Positions 2,376 through 28,358 of a stretch of DNA of 64,000 bases are shown one piece after another. The position numbers were made by a program, and so were the translations under genes. The notes beneath the pieces are model-generated. The model ran no database searches, was not told the DNA's origin, and worked only from the letters and a program-made list of their open reading frames with translations. The stretch's first letter is position 1, and each line of letters begins with the position of its first letter. Location: sequence record OP991903.1; one strand, given 5' to 3'.

Positions 2376-3818
2376 ATGAAAATTATCTTTACGGTATTTA
2401 ACAGTCAGGGCGAGTTGATTGACAGCCCAGAGCTCCAACTCTTTGACGAAGTGACACGTGAGCAACTGGTTACCGCTCTTCCGTCTTTCCGTCTGGGTGA
2501 CGCCGGACATGGCATTACTGTCCGCGCTAAAGATTTCCTGAAGTCAACGCCTGATGCAGCTATCCTTGAGATGCTGACCGATGCACTGAACGAAGCTGCA
2601 CTGTTAAGCGACGTACAGCTGGAGGAGGTCACTGACCCGCACGCTCTCCTGTTGGCTGAACTGAACGACACCGTAGTAGGTGAAGGTGACGCGCAACTGA
2701 AGTTCGTGGCCGTGGGTGATTCCCAGTCGGCGGTGTTCCAACTGCGTGATTCTGCGGATGGTCTGATTTTCAGCCTGCCGCTGGAACGTGGTCACATTGC
2801 TCGTGCCACTAACGTATACAACGCGATTGCTCGCATCAATGCTGCGGCTGAGAAGTGGGAAATGCTTCAGGCTGCGCCGGTCCAGGACGCCAAAGGTCAG
2901 AACCCAGGTGTGCGCATGTTAACGGCCGCGGATATTCAGACCATGTTCAGTCTGACCTTCCCAGGCTTCCAGATTCCTCAGCTTGACCAGGTCGTTGAAC
3001 ACCCGGCTCCGAAGATTGCCGAAATCCTGGCAGCCTACGGTGAAGCAGACAGCGCGTCTAACGCACTGACCCGTGAAACCCAACTGGGCGACCCACAGGG
3101 AACAGCTGCGCCGGTAGCACTGAGCCCTGCGGCTATCAAACCGGAAGACTTCAACTACGACCGTGACCGCGAAGAAGCAGCGCGCGCGTACGACGTTCGT
3201 TTCCGTGGTATCATCATCGACCCGAAACGCGACCCGTTTGAAGGTACCTATCTGCCAAAAGACGTGGTCCACATGGAAGGCGCACTCCATTACCTGAACG
3301 GTAAACTGGAATGGGTCAAATTCCCTCTGGCCGGTAACGGTGGTTCATGGCGTATCTGGTTGGCGTCGGTAGCAGGTAAACGTGCGGTGGGTGGTCCGAA
3401 TGCCCCGGAGGTGGAGATTCCTCCAGCGGGAAAGCCTTTGTCGATTCGCTCCGAGCTCGCAAAGCTGGCCCAAACCGCGCCACTCGCAGAAAAATCAAAC
3501 ACCACAGCCGCCGCAAGCGCAAGTGATGCCTTCTACTTCAATGTGAAAGGTACCAGTGCACTGCGCGTTGTGCTGCGTGGCACCAACCGTGTCGCAGCAG
3601 TAGAACAGGGCCTGGTGACGTTCATTCAACGTGAACTGAAATCCCCAAGCTTCCACGCCATGAGCAACACCTTTAACGTGGCTGGTGAAGTGGTGGGTGA
3701 AAGCGTCACTGTCGCGGTACGTACGGCGCTCCAGATGCTGGGCCTGAACGACGTGACCATTGATGTAGAACCGACCTTCCTGCCGCTTAACGGCGACTAC
3801 GTTGGCTTAGCCGAGTAA
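2376..3818 (+). CDS. hypothetical protein (about 480 aa)
   Basis: Long ORF with phage codon bias; start refined to MKIIFTV because the longer start lies inside the terminator. Confidence 0.75.
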   Translation: MKIIFTVFNSQGELIDSPELQLFDEVTREQLVTALPSFRLGDAGHGITVRAKDFLKSTPDAAILEMLTDALNEAALLSDVQLEEVTDPHALLLAELNDTVVGEGDAQLKFVAVGDSQSAVFQLRDSADGLIFSLPLERGHIARATNVYNAIARINAAAEKWEMLQAAPVQDAKGQNPGVRMLTAADIQTMFSLTFPGFQIPQLDQVVEHPAPKIAEILAAYGEADSASNALTRETQLGDPQGTAAPVALSPAAIKPEDFNYDRDREEAARAYDVRFRGIIIDPKRDPFEGTYLPKDVVHMEGALHYLNGKLEWVKFPLAGNGGSWRIWLASVAGKRAVGGPNAPEVEIPPAGKPLSIRSELAKLAQTAPLAEKSNTTAAASASDAFYFNVKGTSALRVVLRGTNRVAAVEQGLVTFIQRELKSPSFHAMSNTFNVAGEVVGESVTVAVRTALQMLGLNDVTIDVEPTFLPLNGDYVGLAE

Positions 3819-11891: not shown

Positions 11892-11914
11892 TACTAGCGC
11901 CTATTATGGTATGT
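11884..11914 (+). promoter_or_regulatory. 18-bp perfect palindrome followed by tandem TATG late-promoter motifs upstream of MCP
   Basis: ggcgctagtactagcgcc (11884-11901) then tatTATGgTATGt. Confidence 0.6.
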
Positions 11915-11975: not shown

Positions 11976-14276
11976 ATGGCTATTGTCAAATCCAAAGCCG
12001 CGGGCAACTCTGGTTACCGCGACCTTTTCGAAAAACTGGGTTCAGTGGTAAATGACACCTTGAACGTCCTGCCGAACAAGCAGCAGGCGGGTGCGGTGGC
12101 CGTGGCCGTTGAATCCTTCAGCGATTTCGGTATCGACCGCGATGCATTCCAACACAGCTACGACACCACTTTCGGTGAAGTTCAGCGTGTAGCAACCGAG
12201 TCTGCGTTCGCGCTGGCTTCTGAAGCTGACACCCAGGGCGGCGCAGCGTACGGTTTCGCCGTACCGCACATCCGTGCTGCCCAGAAGCGTGTTGCCACTG
12301 AAGCGGCCGCTGTGCTGCTGCAAGGCCACAACAACGTTGGCGGCTACTACAGCAACATCGGTGAAACCGGTGCTGGCTTTAAAGCTGACGACGTAATCCG
12401 CCACGAGCAGATTACTTCTGGCCCGGCTGGTGCGATTCCTGTTGTTCCTTCGCGCGCACTTCCAGCAATGGAATCATTCGATGAGAAAGTAACTGACGAA
12501 TGGCGTCAGCACTCTTACTCCATCGCGATGACTGCGGCGAAACAGCACGAGTTCAACGAGCTGTTCTACAAAACCCAAATCCTGACTCCGGACAACGCGG
12601 GCTTCATCATGACCGTGCGCCGTAACGTAGTCTGGGACGGTTGGAAAGCTCCTGACCAGTCTGGCGATGCTGGCGACTTCCAGAAGCGTAACATCCTGGA
12701 AGGTCTGCTGAACCACGAAATCCTGGAAACGGATACTACCGACCTGATTCCGTGCCTGCAAACCGGCAAAAACGAAAAATACTTCATCGACCCAACTCTG
12801 GTTGCTCCGACCACTGTTGAGCAGTCTGGTGAAGAGTTCCAGACTAACTACCTGGCGTTCAACGTTGGTAGCTTCAGTCTCATCAACCTGGCGCAGACTC
12901 CTTCTCGTATGCAGAAGGGTACGCCGAACCACACCGATTCACTGGACAGCCGTATCGCGCTGGGTGAGCTGATTGTTAAAGTCAGCAAAGGTGGCGTGAA
13001 CGAAGCAGTTGACTTCGACGTGAACCGTTCTAACTTCGCACAGTACCTGGCTACCCGCGAAATGAACTTCCGTCAGACCACTGTTAAGTTCCACAACGAC
13101 AGCCTGCCGATTACCCCGGACACCAAGCTGCACTCTAAAGCTGCTTCTGCTATCCTGAAGCCGCTGCAAGATGCTGGCTACACCATCCACCTGAGCATCA
13201 AGGTTGACGGTGAGATGAACGTTGAAAGCGGTAACGGTGACACTCGCGCGCCTGAACTGCGTATCGCGAAAGCGTTCAACGCCCAGGGTCAGGAAGTGGC
13301 TCTGTCCGACGCAACTCTGGCTCCGCTGATTGCTGGTATCACGTTCTCTCCGGCTGGCTACAGCCTGGAAAGCCGCCTGACCAACATCAACCAGCTGGAA
13401 CGTGGTCTGCTGATTGACTCCGACGTGATGAAACACGGCTTCATGATTCCAACTCTGAGCCCGCTGTGCATCATGAAACCTGCGCTGACTGACGACGAAA
13501 AAGTCTATCCGCGTATGGAAGCGCTGCAAAACGCATACCGTCTGCAACTGCGTAACGCGGGTGTTACCACCCTGCTGAACCGCGTTGACACCCTGGAACG
13601 TTACCTGGGCCAGGACACTGCACATCCGCTGGAATCTCAGCCGGGTCTGGAAGGTCTGGGTCAGTACTACGTTCGTCCGTACTTCCGCCGCATCAAGCTG
13701 GACGTTCAGGCAGAACTGAACAGCACCAACTCTGCTGGCCGCGTGGAAGACATCCAGGGTCTGTTCGTATCCGTGATTCAGGAAGCTATCTACCGTGCTG
13801 ACCTGAAAACCGGTTACTCTGCGGCGCTGGAAACTGCGTTCCCGGGCTCTAACCCGAAACCGCACGTTGCAATCGGTACTGACAAACGTCTGCCGAACTA
13901 CCTGATGATTCAGGGCGACGACCGTACCACTGGTATTGGCTTCGACTTCACCGTAGCGTCAATCTCTGACCTGCGTATGAAAGACAAAGTCATCATGACC
14001 TTCACCCTGCCACGTGAAAGCGAAATTCATCCGCTGGACCACGGCATCCTGGGCATGATTCCAGAGTACATCGTTAACTTCGCGATGATTCGTGAACAGC
14101 GCATCGCGAACGAAATCCGTCTGACGCCTCGCTACCGTCACTTCCACTTCCTGCCGCTGATGATTGTCATCGACGTGCTGAACCTGGAAGCTGCAATCGC
14201 AGAACGTACTACCTACAGCACTATTGCTAAGGTATCTGGCGACATCACCACCACTGATGCTACTCCAGCTCCTTGA
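11976..14276 (+). CDS. major capsid protein precursor (phiKZ gp120-like)
   Basis: About 766 aa, strongest codon bias in the window, propeptide with AVE/ATE/AME sites (PAMESFDE), synteny with DnaB and nvRNAP. Confidence 0.92.
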   Translation: MAIVKSKAAGNSGYRDLFEKLGSVVNDTLNVLPNKQQAGAVAVAVESFSDFGIDRDAFQHSYDTTFGEVQRVATESAFALASEADTQGGAAYGFAVPHIRAAQKRVATEAAAVLLQGHNNVGGYYSNIGETGAGFKADDVIRHEQITSGPAGAIPVVPSRALPAMESFDEKVTDEWRQHSYSIAMTAAKQHEFNELFYKTQILTPDNAGFIMTVRRNVVWDGWKAPDQSGDAGDFQKRNILEGLLNHEILETDTTDLIPCLQTGKNEKYFIDPTLVAPTTVEQSGEEFQTNYLAFNVGSFSLINLAQTPSRMQKGTPNHTDSLDSRIALGELIVKVSKGGVNEAVDFDVNRSNFAQYLATREMNFRQTTVKFHNDSLPITPDTKLHSKAASAILKPLQDAGYTIHLSIKVDGEMNVESGNGDTRAPELRIAKAFNAQGQEVALSDATLAPLIAGITFSPAGYSLESRLTNINQLERGLLIDSDVMKHGFMIPTLSPLCIMKPALTDDEKVYPRMEALQNAYRLQLRNAGVTTLLNRVDTLERYLGQDTAHPLESQPGLEGLGQYYVRPYFRRIKLDVQAELNSTNSAGRVEDIQGLFVSVIQEAIYRADLKTGYSAALETAFPGSNPKPHVAIGTDKRLPNYLMIQGDDRTTGIGFDFTVASISDLRMKDKVIMTFTLPRESEIHPLDHGILGMIPEYIVNFAMIREQRIANEIRLTPRYRHFHFLPLMIVIDVLNLEAAIAERTTYSTIAKVSGDITTTDATPAP

Positions 14277-14399
14277 ACTCCACTCAGCCAGGCTATCGTC
14301 AACCCACAGTTGAACGGTTTCACTAAACCGTGATACGCCCCATCGAGGGTTGGTTGGCGAGACCCTCCGGCGACAGTGTAGAGTGCCGTAGTTGAAGCA

Positions 14400-14442
14400 C
14401 CGGGAGCCCTTCGGGGCTCCCGGGCTTTATTTTCTTTTTTTT
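14400..14442 (+). terminator. intrinsic terminator of the MCP transcript
   Basis: ccgggagccc-ttcg-gggctcccgg plus T tract. Confidence 0.9.
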
Positions 14443-14473
14443 GTTTTCGGTCGATGTAAAGAACTTTCAAGAA

Positions 14474-14590: not shown

Positions 14591-15631
14591 ATGGAATCAC
14601 ACTACCACGGGAAACCTCCCCGCTTCAGACGGGAGGCTACATCATTTAAAGCCGTCTTAGGCACCATTATAGAAGAGGAGATTCCAAAGACTCTGCCGCG
14701 GTATGTGAGTGCCAAGAGCATTGTCAACAACACGGGCATCGACTTATACGTGAGAGAACGAGACGGGATTGTCCATCGCATCCCGAGTAAAGAGGTGGTC
14801 CTGGAACTACGCAAAGGGCTGTTCTATACCTGTGGGTATTTCTCAACAGAAGGGGTGGATTATGACGTGACGCGACGCACCGGTAACGGAATGACTTTAG
14901 ACCGTACCCGTGTATCGCAAGTAATTGAACCTTCTCGCTACGGGGCCTCTGTCCAGGTCACGAAGCTAACGCATCATTACTTCTTGGACGCTAAAGATGT
15001 AATGGATAAAGGTGGGGTGTTATATCTGCAAGAACTCGATGTTGTCGTCTCCATGCATGGCCTCGAGCACCTGCCTCAACATCCGTCAGAGAACGTGGAT
15101 TTCCAACTGGCGTTTGAAGAGCGTATTGCTACCATGTCATCGGCCACCTCTGGACTGATGATGGGCGTGGTAGATAATGAGGGCATTTTCGGAACGCGCT
15201 ACATTAACGTCAACGGCTTTGTCTGTAAGGTGTCGCCCGTTACTGACCCGTTACAGCCATCAGGTATTTATGTCTACGTTCCGGGAAACGTGGATAAGCG
15301 GACGGAAATCGTTTTTTACGAGCTCCACTCATCTGATGAACAATGTCCGATAAAGTTTTATCCGACGCAGGCGGAAGCAGCAGCACACGGTGACATTTTC
15401 GCCGAAGCTGAGAAAGCCTGGGAGCGGGAGAAGCAAGACTTCGAGAAACAGATATTAACCCTGAAGAATGAGAACGAACTGAAATCGCTCGAGCGCAAAG
15501 ACTATTTCGAATACCGTAGCCTCGACCGTAAAGACGACAGTGAACACCTGAAGATGTTTGTTGCCAGTGCCGGTATTATCGGCGGGGCAATTACCGTAAT
15601 CAGTAAGCTGGCGGATTGGTTCCGTTCTTGA
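14591..15631 (+). CDS. conserved jumbo-phage protein (phiKZ gp122-position), C-terminal coiled coil and hydrophobic tail
   Basis: 346-aa ORF between MCP and nvRNAP beta. Confidence 0.6.
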   Translation: MESHYHGKPPRFRREATSFKAVLGTIIEEEIPKTLPRYVSAKSIVNNTGIDLYVRERDGIVHRIPSKEVVLELRKGLFYTCGYFSTEGVDYDVTRRTGNGMTLDRTRVSQVIEPSRYGASVQVTKLTHHYFLDAKDVMDKGGVLYLQELDVVVSMHGLEHLPQHPSENVDFQLAFEERIATMSSATSGLMMGVVDNEGIFGTRYINVNGFVCKVSPVTDPLQPSGIYVYVPGNVDKRTEIVFYELHSSDEQCPIKFYPTQAEAAAHGDIFAEAEKAWEREKQDFEKQILTLKNENELKSLERKDYFEYRSLDRKDDSEHLKMFVASAGIIGGAITVISKLADWFRS

Positions 15632-15637
15632 CAACCA

Positions 15638-17302
15638 ATGGAGGATAAGGTGAGCTTCGACCTCGAACTATTTGATTTTATCCATGATGACCTGCCGCAG
15701 TTCAACCCGCGCATCTGCGAAGGCTTTGTGGGCGAGGCGATGGAAAGCGACCTCGAGTATCTTGACTCGGTGGCACGCTGCGCTGATGAGGGTTTTCCTC
15801 CGGAATTCCGTTACATGGGTATACGCCGGTTATCGCCGTTAGAAACCGTCAAAGAAACCCTAATGAAATCCGACAGCGGCAAGCGTGAGTTTGACATTGC
15901 TGAATCTGACCTGTACTTGGCAGAAATGCTGTTCAAGTATACTGACCCCAAAACGAAACAAGAGACGCTGATTCCCAAGCCCATCTTCTTGCCTTTCGCT
16001 GGGGAGGCCGGTAACCTTATGCTCTCGGGTACTACCAACACGATTGCATCCGTGTTAGGCGACCCGGTGTTTACGGTAACTGACCGTGACGTGTTTGTCA
16101 TCTTCGCCCGTGCGAAGTTTACTATGGAGACGCAGCAGTACCAGCTCTTGCAGGATGGGGAAACGGTTAACAGCTACGTGGTGAAGGTAACGGCGCATAA
16201 TGCCCGCCCTAAAACCAAAGCCAGTGAAGTGCGTCATTTACCCAAGACCATTTCCACAACCGGTCACTACCTGTTCTGTAAGTACGGTGTTACTGATGTC
16301 TTCCGTCGTTTCTACGGCCTGGACGTAATCGTCTGCGACGTCAACGATGTGCGTGAGATGTATCAGGGCGAGCAATGGACCGTGCTCAGTTCCAAGTACG
16401 CTTGCGGTATCGGACGTCCGGTGCACTCGCCGAAGAAATATGGGATGCCGACCCAGTTAAACCTGGTGTTCCGTACCGACCAGTTGACCATGAAGAACAC
16501 CGACTTCCACACGGCAGCGGCACACTTCTTCTACGTGGTTGACCACTTCCCGCTGTACTTCAACGCCCAGAACATTGACCATCCGGATTCCTGGAAGGTA
16601 GTGATGGGCTACACGATTCACCGCAGTAACGAGAGCGAAGGGAAACTGTTGAACAAAATCGACAACCACCTGGATTCTCTGGACCGCTACGTGGACGTGA
16701 AAGCACGGCGAGATTTACGTAACATCGGTATAGATGTGCGGGATATCTACGAGTTCTTTATCCACATGAACGACACGATTCAGCAACGCATGAACAACGC
16801 TGACCCGGGTAACATGTGGGGCAAGTACCTGATGGTAAACCGTTACGTGTATTCGAGCATTACCGACGCCATCTTTAACCTGGGTTGGTCTTTAAACCGC
16901 GAACGGCATCCGATTTCGTTACAGAAAATCAAGCTGTTACTCGGTAAGAAGATTAACATTCTTTCCTTCCCCATGGGCCGCCGTAGCCACGGTGAGATTA
17001 CCAGCGTGCAGTTCCCTGGTGACTGTTACTTGTTTAAGTACACCTGTAACATCATCCGCCAGACCAACGCAGTCATCCAGAAAGGGAAGAAGAAGAAAGT
17101 AATCAACGTCAACGACGTGAGTTACCATCTTCACCCGTCGGTGGTGGAATGTGGCAGCTACTGCAACTTCCCGAAACCGTCTCCGGATGGCCGCACCAAA
17201 CTGAATCCGTTTGCGTGGATTGACGATGACGGGATGTTTATCCGTAATCCGAAGTACGTGAACCTGCTGAACATGATGAAAGATGAAATCTCAACTTTCT
17301 AA
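15638..17302 (+). CDS. non-virion RNA polymerase beta-like subunit (phiKZ gp123-like)
   Basis: 554 aa; IFLPFAGEAG and C-terminal SVVECGSYCNFPKPSPDGRTKLNPF; synteny. True start may be GTG 15650 (GGAGG SD). Confidence 0.8.
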   Translation: MEDKVSFDLELFDFIHDDLPQFNPRICEGFVGEAMESDLEYLDSVARCADEGFPPEFRYMGIRRLSPLETVKETLMKSDSGKREFDIAESDLYLAEMLFKYTDPKTKQETLIPKPIFLPFAGEAGNLMLSGTTNTIASVLGDPVFTVTDRDVFVIFARAKFTMETQQYQLLQDGETVNSYVVKVTAHNARPKTKASEVRHLPKTISTTGHYLFCKYGVTDVFRRFYGLDVIVCDVNDVREMYQGEQWTVLSSKYACGIGRPVHSPKKYGMPTQLNLVFRTDQLTMKNTDFHTAAAHFFYVVDHFPLYFNAQNIDHPDSWKVVMGYTIHRSNESEGKLLNKIDNHLDSLDRYVDVKARRDLRNIGIDVRDIYEFFIHMNDTIQQRMNNADPGNMWGKYLMVNRYVYSSITDAIFNLGWSLNRERHPISLQKIKLLLGKKINILSFPMGRRSHGEITSVQFPGDCYLFKYTCNIIRQTNAVIQKGKKKKVINVNDVSYHLHPSVVECGSYCNFPKPSPDGRTKLNPFAWIDDDGMFIRNPKYVNLLNMMKDEISTF

Positions 17303-23628: not shown

Positions 23629-25872
23629 ATGGCAGACACCACTCAAGTGCTATATCGGAGTAATGTTCTCCAGTTAGCGCGTTCGATAACGCTCAAGTTC
23701 GCGGCCAACTCCGACGCGCAGAACAAATCGTACTTAGAACTCAAAGGTGTTGACTTTTCGGAACTTCCGCTCAATCAACAGCCCTACTATAAACATTTGG
23801 CGGGACAATACGTTGACGGTATAGACGAGGTGATGACTGTCGTCTCCCTCGATACGCTGGAGGAAATCCCGTTCACATATGATAGCCTTCAGGTACACCG
23901 CGCCACGGCGAAGGCCTACAGCATTGATTCCGACTACCACCGTGCCTTGATGGAGCGCTACCCGGACCAGAAAGATTTGATTCGCGGGATTATCAATCCG
24001 GTGGATATCAATGTGGCGGTAGCAGCCGATGACTTCTCCATCCTTGCCTGGGACACCAGTTTGGTGGAGTCACAAGAATCTAACCTGATGTTCGAACTCC
24101 AGAAGTGGGTAAAGGGGTTCGCGACCCGGTGGTGGATGTCGCGCATTGGTTTCAACCAAAGCATGTACCCGGCGTCCTTCTGGATAACGTTGTTCATGCA
24201 GATGGGTCCCGCAATACTCAACATCCGGTTGGCCAACTGCGGTACCCGTTTCGTGCACAGTTACCACATCTGGGCGTACCTCGGTTCCCACGGCAGGTTG
24301 CACCTTTATAAGGACTACCTGACCACCAAGCAGGCGTTACATTTATACCGTAACATTGCGTGGTACGAGAATAACGCCGGGAAGTCGGAAACGTTCAAGG
24401 AGTTGATTACCAACATCCTGACGGAACGCAATATCCCGCTGGCGGCTTACGAACTTTGGCAGAACGCGGCAAACATTCCGTCGGAGATTCTCCCGGAAAT
24501 GGAAGTGGCGAAGATTCCACTGAACAGTTTGGCTGCGTCTGCAACCGGGGTCGAGAAAACCACCATTGCGGCTGTACTCCGTGCCCAGGTCCCCATGGCG
24601 CGTGACAACAGTGATTACCTGGAAGCTCAGCTGTCTGATGTCCCGGTCCGTGCCAGCTCCACCTACGTGTCAACACTGCCGACCAAGGTCGTGAAGTCCG
24701 AGATGATTGACAATACGGATTCCACGCCTGTGAAGCTCGTAGAGACCATCTACAACGAATGGGTGTGGTTGGTTACCCAAGACCGCTACATCGCCACTGT
24801 GGCGCTGGAGAACCCCTTAACGCAGACGTCTATCACGTTAACGGCTAAGCAGGCGTTGGTGTTGTGGACTTACTTCCTGTTGAAGGAGTACGAGCTACCT
24901 ACGGACGTGATTCCAACGGTTCTCTGTCAGGGTGTCATGCGGGTGATGGCTCCGAAGTACACCGAGTTGGTTGCTGATACTGACATGACGGTCTTGACCC
25001 CGACGATGGTAATGTTGGCGTTAACAGAACACACCCCGGTTGGGAAGATTATCTCGACGGAAGAGTTCTACAAGACGATGGTACAGATTCACGGAAACCG
25101 GTTAGCGCATCGGGTCTTGTACTCGACGCAGGAAGACCCGGTTCGTCGCGGTTACCTGGAACGGTTGACGCAACAGTTCTACTTCGACACCCGTGTGGCG
25201 ATTGTGGATGACCCAACCAAAACGTACGACCAGTGGTTGGCGGAAAACCAGCTGGACTTCTCCAATTTCAAAACCGCAGACTTTGCGGCGATTGGGGAGA
25301 CGTTGTTTGCTCTGGTTACCGGGATGAGTCTGAAACACGTGGCGTCCTTGAAAGAGATTCAAGCGGCGATGCTCGGGATTGTCAGTCAGTTGTCCTCGTA
25401 CAGTATCCAGTTCCTGAAAGAAATCAACGACGGCCCGTACATGGTTCCTGACCGGTTAGCGATGCGCTTCAATGTGAAGAGCGAAGAAAGCTGGCAGCAC
25501 CTGTACCTTGACAACTCCGTTCGGTTCTTTGAAGAGACCAACGAGCACACGTCGATGCGCATTGAACTCCCTATTGCCAACAGTCCACTGCTGAGCAACA
25601 TCGGGATGAAGTCGCACCTCAATGTGCGGATTGGTGGCGGTACCGGTATTAAGGTGTCCCCTATCTCGGAAACCCGTCATCGGATGTACATGCCGGGAGT
25701 ACGGTTTAATCTGGTGCTCGACCCAACCATCCCGGACGTCATGGACCGCCATCGTCTAAACGGGTTAAAGGTTTATCCGGCCACCGGCGAAGAGCCAAAC
25801 TTCGTGGTAGACAACACCCGTTTAACCGGCCTCAAACTAATTAAAGTCACCGACACCGGTGATGACGACTAA
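23629..25872 (+). CDS. virion structural/baseplate protein (phiKZ gp128-like)
   Basis: PYYKHLAGQY, RYPDQKDLIRGI, HSYHIWAYLGSHG motifs; AGGAG SD. Confidence 0.65.
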   Translation: MADTTQVLYRSNVLQLARSITLKFAANSDAQNKSYLELKGVDFSELPLNQQPYYKHLAGQYVDGIDEVMTVVSLDTLEEIPFTYDSLQVHRATAKAYSIDSDYHRALMERYPDQKDLIRGIINPVDINVAVAADDFSILAWDTSLVESQESNLMFELQKWVKGFATRWWMSRIGFNQSMYPASFWITLFMQMGPAILNIRLANCGTRFVHSYHIWAYLGSHGRLHLYKDYLTTKQALHLYRNIAWYENNAGKSETFKELITNILTERNIPLAAYELWQNAANIPSEILPEMEVAKIPLNSLAASATGVEKTTIAAVLRAQVPMARDNSDYLEAQLSDVPVRASSTYVSTLPTKVVKSEMIDNTDSTPVKLVETIYNEWVWLVTQDRYIATVALENPLTQTSITLTAKQALVLWTYFLLKEYELPTDVIPTVLCQGVMRVMAPKYTELVADTDMTVLTPTMVMLALTEHTPVGKIISTEEFYKTMVQIHGNRLAHRVLYSTQEDPVRRGYLERLTQQFYFDTRVAIVDDPTKTYDQWLAENQLDFSNFKTADFAAIGETLFALVTGMSLKHVASLKEIQAAMLGIVSQLSSYSIQFLKEINDGPYMVPDRLAMRFNVKSEESWQHLYLDNSVRFFEETNEHTSMRIELPIANSPLLSNIGMKSHLNVRIGGGTGIKVSPISETRHRMYMPGVRFNLVLDPTIPDVMDRHRLNGLKVYPATGEEPNFVVDNTRLTGLKLIKVTDTGDDD

Positions 25873-25889: not shown

Positions 25890-26738
25890 ATGACTGCCGA
25901 TGGCTACTACAATCTACCCACGTGGCAACTCTTTTTCCGCCAGTTGAAGTTGGATAACCCCAACATTAACTTCACCGCTGAAGAAGTGAAGCTGATTGAT
26001 ATCACACCGTTCATTACCTCCGATACGGAAGTGAATACCAAGTCCACTTTGATTGGTGTTCCGGAGTACGGGCGTGAAGGTACCTGGGAACTGACCCACA
26101 ACCGTCCTGACATCGGCGTCATCTTTGCCGACGTTGAGGTTTGGGTGGCACCGCAAGGGCAAACCCAGAAGTCTGAACTGTTATCGGACATCAATGCACG
26201 CTTTGGGTTCCAGTTAACGGCCGCTGACATCTACGACGGTTACCTGAATCCGCAGCTGGTGCCATACGCCGTTGACCTCGTGGTGCGTGAGAACAACCCG
26301 GCGTTTACCGGGAAGCTCACCGTACATATCGGTCGCCGTAAGCTCCAGTTGGAAACCGTGATGACAAACCATCAGCTGGCCGGGATTAACTACCCAACCA
26401 TGCAGACGGTGAAGATTCAAGGTCCGTTGTTCCTGTACGGGTTCGACTTCTCGTACGCCTACGATGAACTGCAAGCCTTGTTCCCACAAGGACAGGAAAT
26501 CATCGGGGAAACGCTGGACTCCTTTAACCGCAAGGTGGAAACGCCATGGGTTAATGAGGTAACACCACAGGACTGGAACCTGCGTGGTTCACTGGTAACG
26601 TGGAACGGTCTGATTAGCGGAGCCCCGGTTCCAGCGAACAGTACCTGGTACACGCACTGTGTAGTTATCAGTCTTGACGAGAACATGTGCGACAACGTTG
26701 CCGGGTATCTGGTGTTGCATTACAACTTGCCGTCATAG
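25890..26738 (+). CDS. virion tail-associated protein (phiKZ gp130/131 N-domain-like)
   Basis: Shares its N-terminal domain pattern with the 27759 protein; structural operon. Confidence 0.55.
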   Translation: MTADGYYNLPTWQLFFRQLKLDNPNINFTAEEVKLIDITPFITSDTEVNTKSTLIGVPEYGREGTWELTHNRPDIGVIFADVEVWVAPQGQTQKSELLSDINARFGFQLTAADIYDGYLNPQLVPYAVDLVVRENNPAFTGKLTVHIGRRKLQLETVMTNHQLAGINYPTMQTVKIQGPLFLYGFDFSYAYDELQALFPQGQEIIGETLDSFNRKVETPWVNEVTPQDWNLRGSLVTWNGLISGAPVPANSTWYTHCVVISLDENMCDNVAGYLVLHYNLPS

Positions 26739-26780: not shown

Positions 26781-26816
26781 GTCTACCCTTTAATAAGCAA
26801 CCCGGAGAATACTCTG

Positions 26817-27746
26817 ATGGCCGTTAAGATTAGTCCGGTAACCCGGACGGCGATTGGCAGCTTGCTGCAAGATAACTTGCTGGCTGGGAAACAACAACCC
26901 CTGTTGGCCGGTACGACCCTCAACGAATTGCTCCAGATTCAGCAGAACGCGATTCTGGGCCAGGGTGAAAATCCTCGTTTTGGTTACTACGCGATTGGTA
27001 ACAAAGGTCACACCTCGAGCATTGTCGACGGGACCGATACCATCATCGACCTGTACAAACATGCGCCCGAAGATTGTGCGTGCTGGAATCATATCCCGTT
27101 TGTGCTGCGCGAAGAAGCCAACGACCTGTCGGCTGACCTGCGTCTGAACTACGGCCTGCGCCGCAGCGAGCAGCACAACGGCAAGAACTACTTCGCGTAT
27201 TACCTGAAGCGTATTGACCTTTCCGGTACATCCGCCAAAGTCATGCACACCACGGTAGTCAACGGCGTTAGCAACACCGAAGAGTACGAGTTCAGTAATG
27301 CGAACCTGAACCCGGTGCGCCCGGTGGTGTTACCGGATGAAGCCACGACGACGGCTAACGACTTCCTGTCCACTACCATGCCAGTGACCATCGCCTTCGA
27401 CCTGTTCGACGTGAACGAGCTGTTCAACGTGGCGGCGGTGCTGTGGAACAATGAGAAGCGCGCTATCATCTCTGAGCTGGCGTTCTGCTCCGGTGTTGAC
27501 CGTAACATCCAAAGCGTTGGGGCCGGTGGTGCTGCCATCAACTTTAAAGAAGTCATCGGTTGCCAGGTGATTACGCACGTGACCACCTACAAACAGCTGT
27601 CCATCGACAACGAAGGCTTCAACATCAACATGGAAGTCGGTGCGACCGAACCGATGTTGACGGGTTCTGCGCTGTCCGCTGGAGCCAACAACGACCTGTT
27701 AGCGATGGCACGTTCTTCCCTGCTCTCTAACATCACCGTCAGCTAA
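26817..27746 (+). CDS. virion structural protein (phiKZ gp139-like)
   Basis: YYAIGNKGH and HIPFVLRE motifs; GGAG SD; high-expression codons. Confidence 0.6.
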   Translation: MAVKISPVTRTAIGSLLQDNLLAGKQQPLLAGTTLNELLQIQQNAILGQGENPRFGYYAIGNKGHTSSIVDGTDTIIDLYKHAPEDCACWNHIPFVLREEANDLSADLRLNYGLRRSEQHNGKNYFAYYLKRIDLSGTSAKVMHTTVVNGVSNTEEYEFSNANLNPVRPVVLPDEATTTANDFLSTTMPVTIAFDLFDVNELFNVAAVLWNNEKRAIISELAFCSGVDRNIQSVGAGGAAINFKEVIGCQVITHVTTYKQLSIDNEGFNINMEVGATEPMLTGSALSAGANNDLLAMARSSLLSNITVS

Positions 27747-27758
27747 TAAGGGGGCGTG

Positions 27759-28358
27759 ATGGATAACCTGACGCAAACGGGGGTTATTCGTGACGAGCTG
27801 GTCCGGTTGATTAGGGTGGCAAATCCTGAGGGGCCTAACTGGGCTCCCTCTGAGTTGTCTATCGAGTACAAGTCTTACGATTCCCAGACGGACAACAACA
27901 CCATCTGGGTCCGTGACTTGACCAACCGGTTCTTCAGCTACCGCGATTTCGAATACCACCGGGTGGAATTCTCGCTTTTGTTCAAAGGGATTACTCCCAT
28001 GGTGCAGGTTCGTGAAGGGGAAACGGTTGCGGCCGTCCTCAAGCGTTTCTGTATCCAATACGGGTTACCGCAGTACCTGGCTACCGACTTTGAAGACTCC
28101 TCGCTTTTTACGCAAACCGTCCATCTTATTGATGGAAGAGGGAACCTCACGGCGATATTCGCCGATGACTCGCTCGGTTGGCACGGGATTCTTGACATCG
28201 GTCTCTGGGACGGCGTTCCGCACCTGAACACTGCGATTAAGACCACCGACCTCGATGGCTTTACGCCGCCGAACAACGACCTCAGTGAAGCGATTATCTA
28301 CCCTACGCTCGCTGGCTACCGTTACCCCAGCCTCCCAGACGATGAGCAACCCGAATGA
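27759..28358 (+). CDS. virion tail-associated protein with two LxxAIxxxxLxG[FY]xxP motifs
   Basis: Paralog-like to the 25890 protein; C-terminal tandem motif. Confidence 0.55.
   Translation: MDNLTQTGVIRDELVRLIRVANPEGPNWAPSELSIEYKSYDSQTDNNTIWVRDLTNRFFSYRDFEYHRVEFSLLFKGITPMVQVREGETVAAVLKRFCIQYGLPQYLATDFEDSSLFTQTVHLIDGRGNLTAIFADDSLGWHGILDIGLWDGVPHLNTAIKTTDLDGFTPPNNDLSEAIIYPTLAGYRYPSLPDDEQPE

Follow-up and report, generated by a model that had tools for sequence, protein, structure and literature searches.

Capsid proteins extended by recoding are already textbook material, as in the A1 protein of Qβ and the 10B protein of T7. The subject here is the major capsid protein (MCP) gene of the Erwinia amylovora jumbo phage vB_Ea277G, which lies in a stretch of 64,000 nucleotides (nt) from sequence record OP991903.1 (positions 154507–218506, 100% identity; hereafter the window). 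The gene ends in a TGA that is followed in frame by 18 sense codons, and the peptide these would add resembles the assembly tail of DUF7941 fibre proteins. This apparent copying of a fibre protein's own assembly tail sets the present case apart from those described before.

In Qβ, the coat gene ends in a leaky UGA that causes a few percent of the subunits to be extended, and these are found in the capsid and act in host interaction. However, Qβ is a small single-stranded RNA phage with a T=3 capsid whose A1 protein carries a folded domain of ~200 residues, whereas here a double-stranded DNA (dsDNA) jumbo phage with an HK97-fold MCP would add a linear motif of 18–55 residues. No sequence relationship to A1 is claimed. 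In luteovirids the stop that is read through is typically UAG and the ribosomes are eukaryotic. Their coat protein readthrough domain (CP-RTD) is likewise a minor surface component, made by capsid-gene readthrough, for interaction with another organism, but it is a large structured domain of plant RNA viruses (10.1101/2024.10.14.617924), unrelated in sequence and fold to the extension in the window. Tailed dsDNA phages also provide examples, with a minor C-terminally extended MCP being produced by recoding in T7 and T3 (10A/10B), Listeria phages A118, A500, and PSA, and Lactobacillus phage A2 (PMC5009743). These use −1 or +1 frameshifts and often add an Ig-like domain, unlike the in-frame stop and short docking peptide of the window, although three relatives described below appear to take the −1 route. 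Full-text literature searches returned no description of MCP stop-codon readthrough in jumbo phages, in phiKZ/Chimalliviridae, or in other tailed dsDNA phages.

Head appendages such as the phi29 head fibres and T4 Hoc increase the number of host encounters. Capsid fibres of a flagellotropic phage are cited in the discussion of a 2026 preprint on the E. coli phage Goslar (10.64898/2026.04.21.720040). All of these are separate proteins on folded MCP surfaces, whereas here the attachment site itself would be made by recoding of the MCP.

The same preprint describes DUF7941 as a chimallivirus-specific family in which an N-terminal domain is followed by a 'disordered linker' and, in some members, by a C-terminal domain (10.64898/2026.04.21.720040). 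In AlphaFold3 predictions the protomers join head to tail, each linker docking on its neighbour's N-terminal domain, and purified Goslar gp22 forms filaments in negative stain (10.64898/2026.04.21.720040). Each virion contains ~580 copies of gp22 and ~2,140 of gp23, none of which are seen in the maps (10.64898/2026.04.21.720040). The docking motif of these proteins (Goslar gp22/gp23, phiKZ gp126/gp127) is the one found after the MCP stop. In DUF7941 it directly follows the N-terminal domain and its docking is known from the AlphaFold3 prediction and negative-stain filaments, with a baseplate anchor proposed, whereas the MCP carries the peptide only.

The MCP stop codon and the codons beyond it

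The MCP gene (11976–14276, forward strand, as are all features below unless stated) encodes a 766-residue protein of the phiKZ gp120 type. It fits the PhiKZ-type family over its full length, with PF25620 PhiKZ_MCP (E=6e-220) as the only family matched, and also matches phrog_3231 and the capsid structures of Klebsiella phage Kp24 (8bfl, E=2e-219) and phiKZ (8y6v, E=5e-46). The open reading frame (ORF) starts at ATG 11976, with a GTG upstream at 11913. In PhiEaH1 (genus Iapetusvirus), which is 99.8% identical to the window, the gene is annotated as 'major head protein'.

The candidate leaky stop is TGA-A, counting the stop codon and next base (14274–14277). It is followed by the 18-codon in-frame extension TPLSQAIVNPQLNGFTKP (14277–14330), closed by a second TGA (14331–14333), and this arrangement is as the sequence-only reading of the stretch had described it. 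The core of the hook motif, LSQAIVNPQLNGFTKP, lies within the extension at 14283–14330. After the MCP transcript there is an intrinsic terminator-like GC hairpin with a T-run (~14398–14443), recognised from the sequence and its minimum free energy fold, and a hairpin of this kind also stands 3' of the extension in PCH45, Moabite, and others. Eighteen open codons are not significant by themselves, as (61/64)^18 is ~0.4. The records of PhiEaH1 and vB_Ea277G match the window exactly across stop and extension, and in a near-identical IMG/VR contig both are unchanged while the sequence just past the second stop differs. Since these records and the contig agree on stop and extension, sequencing error is excluded.

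A leaky stop followed in frame by a peptide with the motif was found in at least about 20 relatives (genomes or contigs), with MCP identity down to 27%; all lineage counts are lower bounds. The sequence-only reading had proposed looking in homologous MCP genes for a conserved stop plus a synonymously conserved extension and for conservation of the downstream frame, and both were borne out. The lineages are the window with PhiEaH1 and L010; L068, L069, and L070; L071, L072, and L011; PCH45, L015, L020, and SPLA10; L017, L075, and L076; and Moabite, 2050HW, and Totoro. The remotest are the Erwinia phage pEa_SNUABM_54 with L033 and L034 (33% MCP identity), and Goslar (27%) with L032. Of these, L011, L015, L017, and L020 are IMG/VR and metagenome contigs, with L020 the single new lineage gained from the metagenome scan, and L071, L072, L075, and L076 are Logan contigs. 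Scans with single proteins yielded close relatives only. In-frame extensions among relatives are 15–55 codons long. Serratia phage PCH45, whose MCP has ~55% protein identity, reads TGA and then in frame LSEIFKDEVLDGFALP followed by 32 more codons, and Salmonella phage SPLA10 and the Moabitevirus phages Totoro, 2050HW, and Moabite share this layout of TGA plus extension. A second conserved module located deeper in the extension is common to PCH45, L020, and SPLA10.

The stop contexts that precede frame-0 extensions are TGA-A, TGA-C (the commonest), TGA-G, and, once, TAG-C. The latter occurs in L073 (2959–3075), where TAG-C replaces TGA and a 37-codon in-frame extension bears the motif, so use of a leaky stop is not limited to UGA. 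MCP genes of the same clade lacking an extension in any frame end in TAA (FBKp24, KpLz-2_45, L012, L078), as do more distant ones without extension (Eowyn, DT01, Machina, Asesino, EarlPhillipIV). None of 50 database homologues of the MCP carries the motif before its stop.

The pattern of substitution indicates that the extension is under purifying selection in the MCP frame. The three closest MCPs, L068 (95% identity), L069 (93%), and L070 (89%), all keep the TGA, exactly 18 codons, and the second TGA at the same position, and their extensions differ from the window by 1–3 amino-acid and 1–3 synonymous changes. Nucleotide identity of the extension to L068/L069/L070 is 96/83/94%, on a par with the 95/93/89% of the MCP core. 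The flanks drift more: the final 60 nt of the MCP gene are 85/70/65% identical, and the 54 nt past the second stop 91/76/72%. Pooled over four roughly independent pairs, the MCP frame gives a proportion of synonymous differences (pS) of 0.62 and of non-synonymous differences (pN) of 0.22, so that pN/pS is 0.36. Read in the two remaining frames, the same nucleotides give 1.21 and 1.42 and contain stops. Third-position changes predominate in the extensions and many are synonymous.

Other post-stop codons occur in phiKZ, PhiPA3, and RP12. In the MCP genes of phiKZ (L047 1386–1469) and PhiPA3 (L046 1419–1514) the stop is TGA-G, and 26 and 30 codons respectively continue in frame after it. The two peptides have two RYLE[ND]G repeats in common, and over a 19-codon block they show 7 synonymous and 5 non-synonymous codon changes, with differences by codon position of 5/3/11. 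On these comparisons phiKZ itself may have a different readthrough extension. Ralstonia phage RP12 (L042 1413–1460) has TGA-A as its MCP stop, and the 15 in-frame codons after it contain a partial motif, ..SPDGFNEF...

Likeness to DUF7941 linkers and a possible capsid hook

Two DUF7941 virion proteins encoded in the window carry the motif. The shorter (27759–28358; PF25613 and phrog_1037, the latter labelled 'virion structural protein') is the counterpart of Goslar gp23 and consists of the N-terminal domain and two linker motifs (28224–28271, 28281–28328). We propose it as both the model for the hook and its binding partner. The other, of 282 residues (25890–26738; PF25613, E=7e-71; weak PDB match to PHIKZ127), is the counterpart of Goslar gp22 and phiKZ gp127 and has one linker motif at 26349–26396. 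In DUF7941 the motif sits right after an N-terminal domain of ~150 residues, and the motif residues of the 27759 protein are invariant in five homologues of 70–99% identity. The window extension shares 8 of 16 residues with each of the two tandem motifs, and 6 of 16 with the motif of the 25890 protein. The former count is that quoted in the sequence-only reading, which had called the latter match looser. The motif takes the form LS.AI....L.GF..P in the window and h..hh....L.G[FLY]..P in the DUF7941 linkers. The MCP has no N-terminal DUF7941 domain and its extension contains 18 residues with the linker motif; as only the linker is copied, the extended MCP is not a member of the DUF7941 family.

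Searches in both directions connect the two. A post-hoc regular expression matches the six-frame translation of the window at the extension, 28224–28271, 28281–28328, and 26349–26396 only. A scoring matrix built only from the MCP extensions of other phages ranks 28224–28271 top among 249,040 six-frame positions (~98% of the genome), with 16.6 bits against 13.4 for the runner-up. The second-best match within the window, at 1276–1323 on the reverse strand, is antisense to a 454-residue ORF and was taken as chance. With the reciprocal matrix, built from DUF7941 linkers, the frame-0 post-stop peptides of all lineages with TGA or TAG gain between +3 and +19 bits, RP12, phiKZ, and PhiPA3 being the exceptions, and motif-less MCP C-termini score ~0 or lower, except L012 at 6.2 bits.

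The likeness extends to individual phages. In Smith-Waterman alignments of three extensions against 13 proteins, each extension aligns best with the short DUF7941 protein of its own phage, with scores of 40 for the window (27759 protein), 57 for Goslar (gp23), and 31 for Moabite (gp136, a gp23 homologue). The Goslar post-stop peptide, ..SLDDILDDNVADGFIAP.., matches the C-terminal tail of gp23, ..QLATVLADNVADGFVKP.., with DNVADGF in common, and the Moabite peptide, TLGEAFENPLSGFDPA, matches the tail of gp136, ..TLQSFSENLGGFDAPAA. At the level of sequence, mimicry of the phage's own DUF7941 tail is thus lineage-specific in the three of three lineages tested. A fourth pairing was sought by way of the DUF7208 neighbour, but the contigs obtained lacked either a corresponding MCP locus or a short DUF7941 gene.

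These observations make it probable, though far from assured, that programmed UGA readthrough extends a small number of MCP copies, which then act as capsid seeds for DUF7941 fibres. Most ribosomes would halt at the UGA at 14274–14276 to give normal MCP. A small fraction would decode it, presumably with a near-cognate tRNA of the host, and would incorporate 18 more residues before halting at the second UGA. Of the ~1,600 MCP copies expected if the capsid is T=27 like that of Goslar, anything from a handful to tens would then be extended. On the outside of the capsid, each extended subunit would present a replica of the DUF7941 polymerisation tail, and a DUF7941 N-terminal domain could dock on the displayed peptide, making the extended MCP the seed or anchor of a head fibre. 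The leakiness of the stop would then set the number of capsid anchors. Within this scheme we infer the translation and its rate, the decoding tRNA, the binding by the DUF7941 N-terminal domain, and the fibre role. The sequence-only reading had likewise proposed that readthrough gives a minor MCP form a hook common to tail-associated proteins, and the sequence-level parts of that proposal are supported by the conservation, the selection, and the DUF7941 linker match.

The location of the MCP C-terminus is compatible with such a role. In phiKZ the C-terminal arm is modelled to the last residue, and at pentons it passes between, and contacts, subunits of gp244, a decoration protein of the outer surface (PMC11297242). 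A C-terminal green fluorescent protein fusion of the Goslar MCP shows capsid-like localisation. Because the phiKZ arm is on the outer surface and the Goslar fusion localises like capsids, an MCP extension would be expected to point outward.

Several points weigh against fibre seeding at the capsid. The motif is short, and under the extension-derived matrix the window extension itself is only 13th genome-wide, at 10.4 bits. Comparison of the L069 extension with its DUF7941 protein, P0004, gave no residue-by-residue co-variation beyond the shared core. An AlphaFold2 monomer of the short DUF7941 protein, from a 5-sequence alignment, reached a pLDDT of 38 and is uninformative. Klebsiella phages of the Kp24 group keep DUF7941 proteins yet have no MCP extension, so the hook is dispensable in some lineages, and the phiKZ and PhiPA3 extensions are unlike DUF7941 linkers. 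The authors of the Goslar study proposed a fibre cloud anchored at the peripheral baseplate, and they report no DUF7941 density on the capsid and do not mention readthrough (10.64898/2026.04.21.720040). Flexible, sub-stoichiometric fibres would, however, average out in capsid maps.

Some of these points favour the rival that survives best, in which the extension is made by recoding but has another role, such as binding a decoration protein, the phage nucleus shell in docking, or the host surface, or tuning capsid assembly. The DUF7941 likeness would then reflect a shared partner outside the family, or competition with fibre assembly. Conservation and selection show that the peptide matters but not what its partner is, the PCH45-type extensions continue past the motif into a second conserved module, the extensions of phiKZ and PhiPA3 are conserved but different in sequence, and DUF7941 proteins have been placed at the baseplate (10.64898/2026.04.21.720040). 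Against this stands the match of each extension to its own phage's DUF7941 protein in three of three lineages, which is most simply a shared binding site evolving with the N-terminal domain. Another role is therefore considered unlikely, though it deserves to be kept in view, and capsid seeding of DUF7941 fibres is preferred.

Related motifs also occur in neighbouring virion genes. Between the two DUF7941 genes lies a DUF7208 gene (26814–27746; PF23838, E=3.5e-104), whose product is a homologue, by alignment, of Goslar gp32 and phiKZ gp139. Upstream of them is a homologue of Goslar gp35 (23629–25872; phmmer E=5e-106). In Goslar, gp32 is a baseplate spoke protein and gp35 an upper-wedge baseplate protein (10.64898/2026.04.21.720040). 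The C-terminal 41 residues of the gp35 homologue (25747–25869) contain two motif-like L.GL copies, ..RLNGLKVYP.. and ..RLTGLKLIK.., and Goslar gp35 and the L059 homologue have L.GL...P-like tails too. Judged by sequence, such gp35-type tails could be baseplate-side hooks for DUF7941 proteins. Some DUF7941 proteins, such as Moabite gp138 (L050 2474–3622) and Kp24 gp363 (L051 2474–3619), carry at least five tandem linker motifs (..DLEGLEYP..), an arrangement that could permit branching. Proteins of this type are retained in the Kp24 group, whose MCP is not extended.

Candidate routes past the stop

UGA is the leakiest stop in enterobacteria, being read at a low rate by tRNA-Trp, and both UGA-A and UGA-C are leaky contexts in E. 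coli. Poole, Brown and Tate reportedly ranked UGA-C as the weakest termination signal in E. coli in 1995. Most highly expressed E. coli genes use UAAU (review PMC5829715), which makes TGA an unusual choice for the most abundant late protein. Stop usage over 59 ORFs is 44 TAA, 8 TGA, and 7 TAG. TGA is therefore an ordinary minority stop in this phage and the code is not reassigned. ARAGORN found no tRNA genes in the window together with OP991903 1–100000 and 104600–154599, ~98% of the genome (100001–104599 unscanned), so a phage suppressor tRNA is unlikely.

Other relatives appear to reach the same peptide by a different route. In L074, L077, and L079 the MCP ends in TAA and frame 0 is empty, but a clear hook homologue is encoded in the −1 frame, which runs past the stop without interruption. 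In L074 (~2850–3020) and L077 (~2855–3025) the −1 frame reads ..LSELFNKPNLNGF.. and then a second module like that of PCH45, and the heptamer C_CCA_AAG stands two codons ahead of the stop. The −1 frame of L077 does not stay open further upstream. In L079 (~2945–3020) it reads ..LSEVFGTSLNAF.. behind the heptamer A_AAA_AAG. Both heptamers are canonical X_XXY_YYZ sites that end one or two codons ahead of the stop, and E. coli dnaX has one of the same class as A_AAA_AAG. These three are candidates for programmed −1 frameshifting in place of readthrough. The window has no slippery heptamer, its −1 frame is without the motif, and its extension is in frame 0, so it is not a frameshift site. With UGA, UAG, and two −1 heptamers all apparently leading to one peptide, it is hard to see how this could arise unless selection maintains a minor extended MCP.

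These routes bear on three weaker explanations. In the first, the UGA would encode selenocysteine, directed by a hairpin in the extension resembling a selenocysteine insertion sequence (SECIS). Enterobacterial hosts generally possess the selenocysteine machinery, the in-frame UGA is conserved, and the window RNA at 14260–14450 is strongly structured (z = −4.2). However, most of this folding energy comes from the terminator hairpin and from pairings beyond the second stop. RNAalifold found no shared base pairs 3' of the UGA across 10 lineages and Rfam gave no match at E≤1, which disfavours both a SECIS element and a conserved stimulatory structure. What is conserved is the amino-acid sequence, with synonymous codon changes being numerous, and the UGA is replaced by TAG in one lineage and by a −1 frame in three. 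Selenocysteine is accordingly judged very improbable.

A second explanation, which is equally hard to credit, takes the conserved codons as an independent small ORF or as a nucleic-acid signal (terminator, promoter, or packaging element) and not as an extension of the MCP. Their position does suit a signal, being near the 3' end of a transcript that is expressed very strongly, just ahead of the terminator. Nevertheless, no ATG, GTG, or TTG lies upstream of the motif in the window or among the pre-motif codons of PCH45. The MCP frame is kept throughout, except where a −1 frame comes with a slippery site, and third positions vary while the amino acids are kept and no conserved structure is seen.

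The third concerns phages in which the tail is constitutive. A motif-like tail lies within the normal MCP C-terminus, in the last ~25 codons before a TAA, in the SPN3US-like phages L028 (SA002) and L036–L039, in Xanthomonas phage RTH11 (L026), and in Proteus phage 10 (L041), with examples such as ..VLDGLNAQP.., ..YLNGLKYP.., and ..DLDGLKQP... The MCP C-terminus of the SPN3US-like phages contains ...LAANIATAVLDGLNAQP... As the motif is inside the MCP ORF, every subunit would carry the tail in these phages. The sequence-only reading had allowed that the stop might be a recent nonsense mutation or an error, as relatives encoding the peptide without an internal stop would suggest; such relatives exist only in these distant clades. 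A constitutive motif in distant clades argues for function and not for error. That a nonsense mutation or sequencing error severed an ancestral C-terminus whose codons are now decaying, the reading these clades might favour, is the least credible explanation and is refuted by a stop and open frame kept in at least about 20 independent genomes and metagenome contigs, by purifying selection (pN/pS of 0.36 in the MCP frame only, with the extension better kept than both flanks), by the agreement of three independent isolates or contigs of the window's phage type on the stop and all 18 codons, and by lineages that reach the peptide through a −1 frame with slippery heptamers.

An in-frame pair of ORFs directly after the MCP gene, 14591–15631 (ending in TGA-C) and 15638–17302, two codons apart, was also considered. 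The frame relation is absent in Moabite and Totoro and is probably due to chance. The Kp24 homologue of the 15638–17302 product is annotated as a putative RNA polymerase beta subunit.

Implications for chimallivirus virions

Post-stop extensions are present in model phages, with the hook motif in Goslar and a different conserved peptide in phiKZ and PhiPA3. Because Goslar virion mass spectrometry and cryo-electron microscopy maps of Goslar and phiKZ exist, the idea can be checked by re-analysis. For annotation, MCP genes of this kind should receive a recoding note, and the post-stop peptide should be included in proteomic search databases. The group also offers an unusually clear natural case of different recoding mechanisms converging on one peptide.

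A wider generalisation is more tentative, and perhaps slightly more apt to fail than to hold. It proposes that chimallivirus-type jumbo phages set the number of their capsid fibres through recoding at the MCP 3' end, with each rare extended subunit seeding a DUF7941 filament on the head. Selection for such a sub-stoichiometric hook would be strong enough to bring different lineages to it by four routes (UGA, UAG, and −1 at two heptamers), and other clades would place the hook on every subunit. Fibre seeding on the head would offer an answer to the question left open by the Goslar preprint of where and how thousands of DUF7941 fibre subunits attach. If true, it would account for part of the ~2,500 unplaced DUF7941 copies per virion.

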